64,000 bases of DNA, taken from Bugula neritina. Lineage: Eukaryota; Animalia; Bryozoa. The notes beneath the pieces are model-generated. The model had not been told where the DNA came from, did not search any database, and saw nothing but the letters and a program-made list of their open reading frames with translations. Made by a program: the position numbers and the translations under genes. Shown here piece by piece: positions 18,005 to 21,000 of the stretch (positions are counted from its first letter, which is position 1; every line of letters begins with the position of its first letter). Where the stretch lies: the NCBI GenBank assembly GCA_964035545.1, contig OZ037766.1, positions 4,268,722-4,332,721 on the forward strand, in the 5' to 3' direction.

Positions 18005-21000
18005 CCTCTATATATATAAATATATATATATACACATACACACATACACATATACATATACATATATCATGATACCATATAGGCCTATAATGTGATTTCT
18101 ATATTTAAATTTTTGCAGCTATTTCTTAAAGGCTTGCTAATTCATAAAGTAATTATTTTACCGAAAAGCAAAAAATATGCTAGTATTTCAGAAAACTTGG
18201 TACTAGTGAAAATATCATATAATTTATAGACTGCAGGTAATTGTGGAAATGGTTAGGGAATATCACTTGCTTACCTCTACGGAATTATATTTCTATAGTT
18301 GGTTAGATCACAGCTACTGTATACTTACAACAGAAGAATGTTAACTGTGTGCTGTAAGTGTTATAATATGAGAAATTCTGTAGAAGAGGTACTGGCAGTA
18401 GAGATTTCCTATAAGATGGAAGTTGGTGAAAGAGTAATTAAAATTGAACAGTGTTATTTACTTATTTAAGGTCTAAAATATTATAATTAATAAATATTTG
18501 GTGCTAGAAATGCTCCCCCCTACACTCTAAAGTTTAAATCAGTTTAAAATACTTATATTTGAACATGGAGTAGCTCTCATGATGGTTAATCTTTATAATA
18601 ATCTTCTAGCAGTTGAAAATTCCACCCAATAATGAACCGCTTGTCAGCTTGGTATATTATGAGAACCTTAGTGGGAATGGATACGTTGAGGTGGAGGCTA
18701 GCAAAGCAGTTCAGGTGAACATCTCAGCCAGTAGAAACAGATCACTAGAAGCACACCTGGGACCAATATACAAATCGAAAGTTTGCAAGCAATTACTGAT
18801 GGACCGATTCAAAGACAGGTGAGCCAACTAAATATCTATTGAGTAGAACCTAGCTACTCCTTTGCACAAGATATATAATATTTTTGAACAATTACTCAGT
18901 ATGTTGTTGATAAAATATTATTATAAGCATGTTCTCTTAAATCAGCCATGCATCTCATTATAAAATGTAAAGATTCGAACTGCTAATGCTTTAATCATAA
19001 ATCACAACTATAATATATAACTACAAAAGATATGCTCTTTTAATCGATCCATTGATTCCTTCAAGATAACATATTATAATAACTTATTATAACCAATAGT
19101 TCACAAATAGTGTATACTAACTTGCAAATGAAGTACCTAATAAAATAAAAGTATTATGTATTACAGATTATATATTATGCAAGATAAATATAAGAAGTTT
19201 TGTTTATATTTATTTTGGGAGTAATAATAAAAAACATTGTTTTAACAATTGTAGCAAGCTGGATATGAGTAAGACGCTACTGAAACAGATGTGTGAGAGT
19301 GATACTAGAACACTGTGTGTGGTCACCGGCGTGGTGAAGACAACCACCGAAGCTTCAGTGATCTTTCATGACAGTGCAGAAGGAGGATTCAACGCAAAAG
19401 TATAATGAGCCATCACACTGAATTGACTATAGTATACTTGACAGACTCACCTGACTATACATAGTGTACTTGACACTTTGACTCAACTACAATGTACTTG
19501 ACACACTGACTTGACTACTATATTCTTGGTCGACTGACTTGACTACAATGTACTTGACACTTTGACTCAACTACAATGTACTTGACAAGCTGACTTGACT
19601 ATAATGTACTTGACAAGCTGACTATGGTGTACTTAACACGTAGACATGAATGTAAATTTAGTTAACATATCAATGACTGTCAATGAATAGTAAGTTGACT
19701 AGGCAGGCATAAGTTTAAAATTCATAGTAATTTATCTCATGATTGTAAATACAAAGACAAGAGAATTTAAATTGTTTGTTCAAACTTTGGGTAAAACTCA
19801 AAGATATACGAGTATTGTATACAACTCTCTGTGGCCACTGGCCAGGTGATAGTTGCAGGTGGAGAAGTGAGTGGCGGAGGAGGTGGCAGCAGAAATACAA
19901 GAATATTAATGATGATTCCAAAAGAAACGGTGTTGGCCTACAAAGTAACCGAGTTACAGATCGACCGCAACACTGGTCAGTTTTCTTGATTATTTAAATA
20001 TATAAAGTGGAAAATGGGGTATAGTAAATGAGTTACACACTGCACACATGCAGCCTGTTTTGTGCAAGTCTCGTGAAATGTCAAAAACTACACAAGTTTT
20101 TATAACCATATTGTCATTTTTTACTTAAACAGCTTCAAAAAGGAGCAGTTTGATTTTTCCAGGTCTGTGTGTCCATGCCGGTTTGTTATGTTGAAACAAA
20201 CTGCTTTAAACAAATGAGTATCTTTCGAAATTGGTTAATTTTCTGCATTGCTTTTAAGATTCCTCGAATAAATGCAAATTATTAATTGCATTCTCACTTT
20301 ATATAGCAGTCGTGGCTATAATTGAGCATGAGTACATTAAATGTAATAAGATTATGTTCCTGTAGGTGACGCAGAAATGGTTCTATCTAATAAAGCCAAG
20401 GGTGGATTTGGTATATTTCAGACCACACGTCAGGGTAAGTTATAGTTTACATACTGGCTTCAGTATAGATGGTTTACTACTCCCTTTTATATTTATACAG
20501 CAGTGTACTATTACCCTATTCTACTTGCCAATGTTCCATGTTCAGCTACAGCTTTATTAAATGCAGGTCCAAATAAACAAACCATATTCCGGCACGGGAA
20601 GAGAATTGCAGCTCCCGAAGTTCCTTCAGCAAGGCTTTACCAGCGTAGTGCTTTATATGGTGAGTGCAGTTTAATACATTATAGGTGAATGTAGTATAAT
20701 ACATATAGGTGAGTGTAGTATAATACTTTGGTGAGTGTAGCTGAATACAAAGGTGAGTGTAGTGTGATACATAAGAGAGTGTAGTGTAATTATGCATAGG
20801 TCGGTGTATTGTAATACGTAGGTGAGTGAAGTGTAATGCAAATCACAATCGAAAATAATTGAAATATTGTGCATTTTTACCTTTTTGTTTTACAAAGTTG
20901 TGGCTTACAAAACTCTCAAAATGCACACTATTGTGTTATTCATTTCATTAATTACATTGGGCGTATTATATACTATATTGTATAAACTATTTGGTTTGCA

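Follow-up and report, generated by a model that had tools for sequence, protein, structure and literature searches.

This report concerns a pair of linked gasdermin genes, here called A and B, in a 64,000-nucleotide stretch of bryozoan genomic DNA (contig OZ037766.1; hereafter the window, to which coordinates refer unless another contig is named). When the two copies are compared with each other and with the Bugula neritina orthologue of B (B′), the predicted second membrane-inserting hairpin of A (hairpin 2, strands beta7-beta8) emerges as the only part of the pore-forming N-terminal domain (N-domain) whose replacement rate lies above all of the neutral yardsticks applied, and we consider it somewhat likely that this hairpin has been under positive selection. 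Gasdermins are the executioners of pyroptosis. To our knowledge, how their pore-forming fingers change without loss of function is poorly known, and invertebrate gasdermins have barely been studied. A preliminary description of the window had reported an excess of amino-acid changes between positions 19255 and 19975 and had suggested selection on pore properties or escape from an inhibitor; in A, exon 3 begins at the first of these positions and exon 4 ends at the second.

Results

The divergence of A from B is distributed unevenly over the gene. In exon 4, 20 of 43 residues and 31 of 129 nucleotides differ between the copies, and of the 23 conserved codons only 3 differ silently. The excess first described here is real and its three silent changes were rightly counted, with the number of changed residues set one too low (19 of 43). 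Exon 3 differs at 19 of its 48 residues, 14 of which fall in the last 20 and 5 in the first 28 (hand count), in agreement with the earlier statement that the second half of this exon is diverged too; the earlier count of 7 differences among the 90 residues of the last exon is also correct. Within hairpin 2 itself, 28 of 40 positions are rewritten between the copies, and with 17 hydrophobic residues in A against 12 in both B and B′, the predicted hairpin of A is the more hydrophobic one, with changed charges. Pairwise estimates of omega (the ratio of the replacement rate, dN, to the silent rate, dS) are about 1.0 for the whole gene, about 1.3 for the N-domain, about 0.5 for the C-terminal domain (C-domain) and, depending on the method, 1.2-2.7 for exon 4. 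Silent divergence also varies, from a dS of 0.07-0.11 in the last exon to 0.15-0.27 in exon 4; these two exons are 8-fold apart in dN and only about 2-fold apart in dS.

With B′ as the third sequence for polarising changes, the excess can be set against several neutral standards. The A branch carries 31 replacement (Nd) and 4 silent (Sd) changes in the 44 codons of hairpin 2, compared with 51 and 15 in the rest of the N-domain, and the maximum-likelihood omega of hairpin 2 is 3.1-3.9 (p 0.023-0.057) across kappa values of 2.0-3.2, two frequency models and two choices of boundary. The preliminary description had asked whether omega would stay above 1 with conversion tracts set aside; on the A branch it does, at p values of 0.02-0.06, which straddle the usual threshold. 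The replacement rate of the hairpin, 0.32 per site, is 2.4 times the pooled synonymous rate (p 0.0014), 1.7 times the rate in clean columns of the adjacent intron 3 (p 0.02), 2.0 times that in clean columns of introns 2-4 (p 0.0013) and 2.15 times that in all unconverted clean intron blocks (p 0.0002), whereas the N-domain minus the hairpin evolves at 0.8 times the intron rate. A scan with a 44-codon window under a stop-avoiding neutral model gave a family-wise p of 0.016, its best window being A residues 184-227. A branch-site-type model gave a likelihood-ratio test (LRT) statistic of 4.56 (p 0.033) for exons 1-4 and of 6.73 (p 0.009) for the unconverted codons only, the signal being diffuse and not site-specific. 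Exon 1, for which omega also came out far above 1 (LRT p 0.005-0.011), was rejected as a further candidate: its estimate hangs on a single silent change, and its rate is 0.82 times that of the introns.

The placement of these changes in the fold depends on family profiles and on structural models of a close relative. Searches of A with the PF04598 profile, run exon by exon with a cut-off of 25 bits, gave 30.2 bits for exon 1 (PF04598 2-72), 19.4 for exon 3 (133-176) and 24.6 for exon 4 (185-223), in collinear profile order, and of 58 family-conserved sites A retains 53. P0130 (KAF6032630.1, 'DFNB59'), an annotated protein of B. neritina that matches profile positions 1-238 of 240 at 93.5 bits, was used as a stand-in for A and B in structure and fold searches. 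Its best matches among solved structures are the human GSDME-NT pore chains 9vlz, 9h5m and 9pe0 (E = 1.5e-12), and by way of this alignment the variable stretch lies opposite GSDME 164-210, in which C168, C180 and G199 (the last in beta8) are found, with I217 in the beta8-beta9 loop that comes after it (PMC13534543). The AlphaFold (AF2) model of P0130 (pLDDT 73) has hairpin strands at 83-108/112-136 and at 181-199/202-220, and the second pair corresponds to A residues 177-216, encoded by 19352-19399 and 19846-19917. In Foldseek comparisons with gasdermin pores, the TM-score to target was 0.81 for 8jyw, 0.77 for 9h5m and 0.81 for 6vfe; alignments of the model with full-length GSDMA3 (5b5r) and with GSDMD extend over about 500 columns, and against GSDMD-CT (6ao3) the model scores 0.58. 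This model predicts two extension regions matching hairpins HP1 and HP2 in the orthologue of B, together with a helical C-domain of autoinhibitory type, although profile searches of the exons and of P0130 returned no Pfam match for the C-domain. A PDB search with exon 4 alone gave no meaningful match. Judged by the P0130 alignment and the modelled strands, the diverged stretch corresponds to hairpin 2 (beta7-beta8) of a GSDME-like gasdermin, as had been proposed at the outset; in the autoinhibited state we take it to be the ED2 element, which contacts the C-domain.

The acceleration belongs to one copy. Parsimony over exons 1-4 assigns 82 replacement and 19 silent changes to the A branch, 11 and 8 to B, and 15 and 22 to B′, and a three-branch codon model gives an omega of 1.62 for A against 0.32 for B and B′, with equal omega rejected (p = 1.8e-5). 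Because the N-domain replacements concentrate on the A branch and omega is 0.32 on the others, B is the conservative copy, held under purifying selection; the direct comparison of B with its B. neritina orthologue gives an omega of 0.24-0.32. For the whole N-domain of A omega is 1.4-1.6, and the N-domain and linker of A are accelerated overall, beyond hairpin 2.

Several features indicate that A is a constrained gene and no neutral relic. Under an empirical intron mutation spectrum, the probability that exons 1-4 of A would have acquired no stop codon by neutral change is 0.005. The A branch carries 47 indels in introns and a single, in-frame one in coding sequence, where about 14-28 would be expected from the intron rates. 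The ancestral MF start, which is present in all other paralogues, was lost, with a 2-nt insertion in A (GATG TTT AAG in B, AATAAG TTT AAG in A; window 17549-17575), and an in-frame ATG was gained at 17551, directly after an AG and 18 nt upstream of the old start, adding six residues. Changes in A hit 5 of 58 family-conserved sites compared with 61 of 139 others (p = 5e-7), and omega in the C-domain is 0.3-0.4 on the A branch. Since stops and indels are so much rarer than expected, an ATG was regained, conserved sites were kept and the C-domain omega is low, A is, to judge by its sequence, not a dead copy.

The two genes have also exchanged sequence. Three-way site patterns of A, B and B′ in 120-column windows group B with B′ over most of the 5′ half, and group A with B against B′ in six blocks (A coordinates 18443-18695, 20403-20522, 22177-22297, 22418-22537, 22874-23255 and 23498-23990). 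Exon 5 and intron 5 (20330-20580 versus 41390-41140) are 93-100% identical between A and B, with an abrupt fall to about 65% in exon 6 from about 20581, and this position marks a sharp edge of a conversion tract inside the linker exon. In the last exon the site patterns are 9:0:2 and 8:2:7, that is, A and B agree against B′ at 9 and 8 sites and B and B′ agree against A at 0 and 2; A and B differ at 7 residues, compared with about 17 for B and B′. On these patterns the last-exon tract arose after the split from B. neritina, and because this exon lies in a post-speciation conversion tract it is a confounded baseline. The contrast that the preliminary description drew between exon 4 and the last exon is thus largely an artefact of gene conversion. 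Ectopic conversion from a third paralogue into the A hairpin was considered and rejected, as there is no donor copy in the genome.

The models of A and B were built from conservation between the two copies and splice signals, with the B. neritina annotation as further support, and all exon junctions in both copies carry canonical AG/GT. The only run that holds this stretch (X1) is genomic DNA, its contigs spanning introns with no splice joints. A has 8 exons and 476 residues and lies on the forward strand. Exon 1 (17551..17775) encodes alpha1 and beta1-beta2 and is flanked by AG/GT; exon 2 (18613..18818), matched by an orthologous exon of its length class in B and in B′, covers the hairpin 1 region, and its first third lies in the conversion tract seen in the site patterns at 18443-18695. 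Exon 3 (19255..19399) ends with the 16 codons (19352-19399) of strand beta7, and exon 4 (19846..19975) opens with the hairpin 2 tip and strand beta8 (19846-19917), its remainder being the conserved IP..VLAY..ELQID core strand. Exon 5 (20366..20434; 69 nt) sits in an A/B block of 98-100% identity within the conversion tract at about 20330-20580 (patterns 9:0:2). Exon 6 (20567..20659) is the linker, strongly diverged from about 20581 on, with an A-branch omega of 2.9 that is not significant. Exon 7 (22220..22509) belongs to the C-domain and has both ends in conversion tracts, and the last exon (22842..23114, stop codon included) lies in the post-speciation tract.

Gasdermin B (39302..43674, reverse strand) has 9 exons and 487 residues when its optional 57-nt linker exon is counted; the model is supported by splice sites and by agreement with B. 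neritina contig L021 and with P0130. Exons 1-5 lie at 43674-43468, 42998-42796, 42391-42247, 41882-41753 and 41354-41286, and exons 6-9 at 41153-41064, 40467-40411 (optional), 40113-39824 and 39574-39302, all on the reverse strand; hairpin 2 is encoded by 42294-42247 and 41882-41811. The peptides quoted in the preliminary description are found at 19846-19974 (+) for A and 41754-41882 (-) for B. The orthologue B′ is carried by B. neritina contigs L021, L022 and L026; in L021, exons 1-6 share identical lengths and splice sites with B, and identity between B and B′ is 90.6% in exons and 86.3% in introns. P0130 departs from the B model at two places only, the start and the linker; the optional linker exon of B is left out of the B. 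neritina annotation. This 57-nt exon is also missing from A, whose linker is exon 6 alone (20567-20659), compared with 41153-41064 plus the optional 40467-40411 in B. No DxxD site is present in the linker of the A gene model, and an LLEED/A motif occurs in the linker of the B model only within the optional exon.

Some local features of the two genes were recorded alongside the models. Tandem units of about 22 nt, beginning with the donor-like GGTGAGT, follow directly after the linker exon in A (20660-20860) and in B (41063-40750), the array being longer in B. In intron 6 of A, X1 depth at 21340-21536 is about 409,000, compared with 60-190 nearby, with many loose ends; the segment is a repeat of very high copy number, inserted in A and not in B. 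Intron 1 of A holds, at 17800-18075, a long (TA)n / TATATAGCCTC microsatellite block that is likewise confined to A and at which X1 contigs break. The C-terminal tail of B (39340-39302) has a cluster of B-specific replacements (KNSSAIRPIF), and A and B. neritina share KNT(S/R)DIQPVF at this place.

The window as a whole has the base composition of AT-rich eukaryotic DNA, and the public sequences closest to it are from Bugula neritina and Watersipora subatra. A and B lie on the arms of an inverted duplication, a palindrome with arms of about 15 kb each and a spacer of about 2 kb. As defined by blastn of arm against arm and by synteny with B. neritina contig L026, the left arm (15675..30273) contains gasdermin A and an MFS transporter copy and the right arm (32426..46545) contains gasdermin B and another such copy. 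Arm-to-arm identity by blastn (about 15.7-30.3 kb versus 46.5-32.4 kb) is a mosaic of 70-95%, and identity between the A and B sides climbs to 84-95% nearing the palindrome centre. The MFS_1 transporter copies (about 24600-29700 and about 38200-33100) are 87-95% identical. In L026 an MFS_1 transporter adjoins B′ at 17758-23220, and the contig runs collinear to the window's B side as far as the palindrome centre; past that point, L026:24305-26335 matches nothing in the window and contains no inverted repeat, and L026 shows no inverted repeat beyond the B′ arm. Protein searches with A exons 1 and 3 returned only the B-type contig or nothing, and a metagenome scan likewise gave no orthologue of A. 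Elsewhere in the genome there are at least five further gasdermin-domain loci (one on the same chromosome, three in tandem and one more copy), among them C2:2048552-2051245, C8:11674079-11688489 and C8:12131488-12131787; at only 30-45% identity to the A and B exons these were too distant and were rejected as outgroups.

Discussion

These observations are consistent with a history that would begin when a segment with a gasdermin and an MFS transporter was duplicated in inverted orientation, giving rise to two GSDME/pejvakin-like genes; by the divergence of unconverted introns, the age of this event would be about double that of the split from B. neritina. B would have kept the ancestral job under purifying selection. 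A would have stayed a working gene, as its open frame, intact splice sites, replacement start and family-conserved residues suggest, and its pore-forming N-domain and linker would have been released from most sequence constraint. Hairpin 2 of A would then have been pushed further by positive selection, becoming more hydrophobic and changing its charges, in which case the excess would represent adaptation of pore or interface properties. Patchy conversion between the arms would keep the C-terminal repressor domain, exon 5 and some introns near-identical, and because the 3′ parts are kept so alike, the contrast between exons is exaggerated. The selection first suggested for this region is hence retained in part: the replacement rate of hairpin 2 does exceed the neutral proxies, but the effect is asymmetric, falling on the A branch, it is set within an N-domain and linker that are accelerated as a whole, and relaxation contributes to it.

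It is worth considering how far relaxation could account for the pattern without any positive selection. In that case the N-domain of A would simply have been freed, and hairpin 2, of which little more than a loose amphipathic and glycine-rich character may be required, would drift at an omega of 1, the excess being noise at the few silent sites. Several observations fit this account and weigh against the reading that we favour. In B and B′ as well, the omega of hairpin 2 is about 1 (1.0-1.25; 6 replacements, 2 silent changes), making it the least constrained part of these copies, and for this reason weak constraint accounts for much of the excess; family-wide conservation is also lowest there (0.16 versus 0.24). 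Exon 4 shows 17 amino-acid changes where 16.5 +/- 2.0 are expected under neutrality given the number of substitutions, and taken alone it does not depart significantly from an omega of 1 (LRT p 0.14-0.16; pairwise p = 0.14). With only 4 silent changes in hairpin 2 the omega interval is wide, with LRT p values of 0.02-0.06, and for the whole N-domain an omega above 1 is of borderline significance (p 0.08-0.19); the disappearance of the exon 1 signal against the intron benchmark illustrates how fragile exon-level omega can be. Of the 92 changed codons, 16 differ at two or three positions, a class of change by which branch-site tests can be inflated. The rate analysis includes only three sequences, its likelihood code was self-written and not codeml, and the hairpin 2 region was picked after the data had been inspected. 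The 'A branch' includes the stem of B from before speciation; with Watersipora as the reference, 19 informative changes are assigned to A and 8 to this stem. In B. neritina, protein searches, the metagenome scan and contig L026 yielded no orthologue of A, and the splicing of A is a prediction from its sequence and its expression a presumption. Nonetheless, drift cannot outrun the neutral rate, and the hairpin evolves at 1.7-2.4 times the pooled synonymous, 4-fold-like and clean intron rates (p 0.02-0.0002), with a window scan that stays significant family-wise; we regard relaxation as the sole cause as unlikely, although it must be taken seriously as a contributor.

Two other accounts were considered. 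If the genes had diverged evenly, the contrast could be a by-product of which parts were recently homogenised, and indeed A and B stand together against B′ in several intron blocks, in exon 5 and the last exon and in portions of exons 2 and 7, identity rises toward the palindrome centre, and dS is lower in the last exon than in exon 4. Conversion, however, lowers silent and replacement divergence alike, and because dN differs 8-fold where dS differs only about 2-fold, it cannot explain the excess itself; a conversion gradient was rejected as the sole cause of the contrast for this reason. Hairpin 2 also stands above neutral within unconverted sequence, so that conversion explains the baseline and not the excess, and as a complete explanation it is improbable. 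It could also be that A is a decaying or unexpressed pseudogene, open in frame by chance, in which case the pattern would say nothing about pore function. The loss of the ancestral start, the whole-gene pairwise omega of about 1.0 and the missing 57-nt linker exon point in this direction. Against it stand the small probability of an open frame, the intact splice sites, the compensating in-frame ATG, the shortage of coding indels, the retention of family-conserved residues and the low omega of the C-domain, and we consider a dead copy very improbable.

Comparison with known systems is informative. The genes resemble the clade of GSDME/DFNA5 and pejvakin (DFNB59) in their PF04598 N-domain and, as modelled on P0130, in two long beta-hairpins and a helical C-domain, and bryozoan relatives are labelled DFNB59 or pejvakin-like by NCBI. 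Identity to vertebrate GSDME, however, is only about 25%, the C-terminal part has no Pfam match, the A linker lacks a canonical DxxD such as the caspase-3-type site of GSDME, and in the alignment neither A nor B has an equivalent of the palmitoylated C168 and C180 in GSDME hairpin 2. As in asymmetric, positively selected duplicates of immune genes, of which other host-defence pore formers give examples, there is a conserved copy (omega about 0.3) and a fast copy (about 1.5) with a hot spot above 1, and the copies, being physically linked, trade sequence through conversion; here, in contrast, it is the membrane-inserting hairpin itself that forms the hot spot, and not the protease-sensing linker alone. 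High Ka/Ks has been reported for mollusc gasdermins in a metazoan survey from which bryozoans were absent (PMC9355259), and a limited literature search found no paper describing selection on gasdermin hairpins. The arrangement also recalls palindromic gene pairs with arm-to-arm conversion, in its inverted arms of about 15 kb, spacer of about 2 kb, mosaic identity and tracts that unite A and B against the orthologue. It differs in that the arms have been homogenised only in part: the 5′ halves of the genes were spared, or conversion there is selected against.

A more specific version of the scenario can be put forward only tentatively. It is possible that A is a neofunctionalised gasdermin, its hairpin 2/ED2 and linker remodelled in the course of an arms race or on a switch to another target membrane, with conversion keeping its repressor domain interchangeable with that of B. 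The drivers may include escape from a pathogen protease or inhibitor acting on an exposed element, or a pore with another lipid preference or lumen charge.

For palindromic duplicates more generally, conversion tracts confound contrasts between exons, which can be read correctly only with an orthologue at hand. If positive selection on the hairpin of A is borne out, the pair would offer an example, from an invertebrate, of adaptive change in the pore-forming strands themselves. The pair amounts to a natural experiment, in which two linked copies have a near-identical repressor domain and one hairpin has been rewritten, and exchanging the hairpin between the copies would be a direct probe of the pore or autoinhibition properties that these strands encode.

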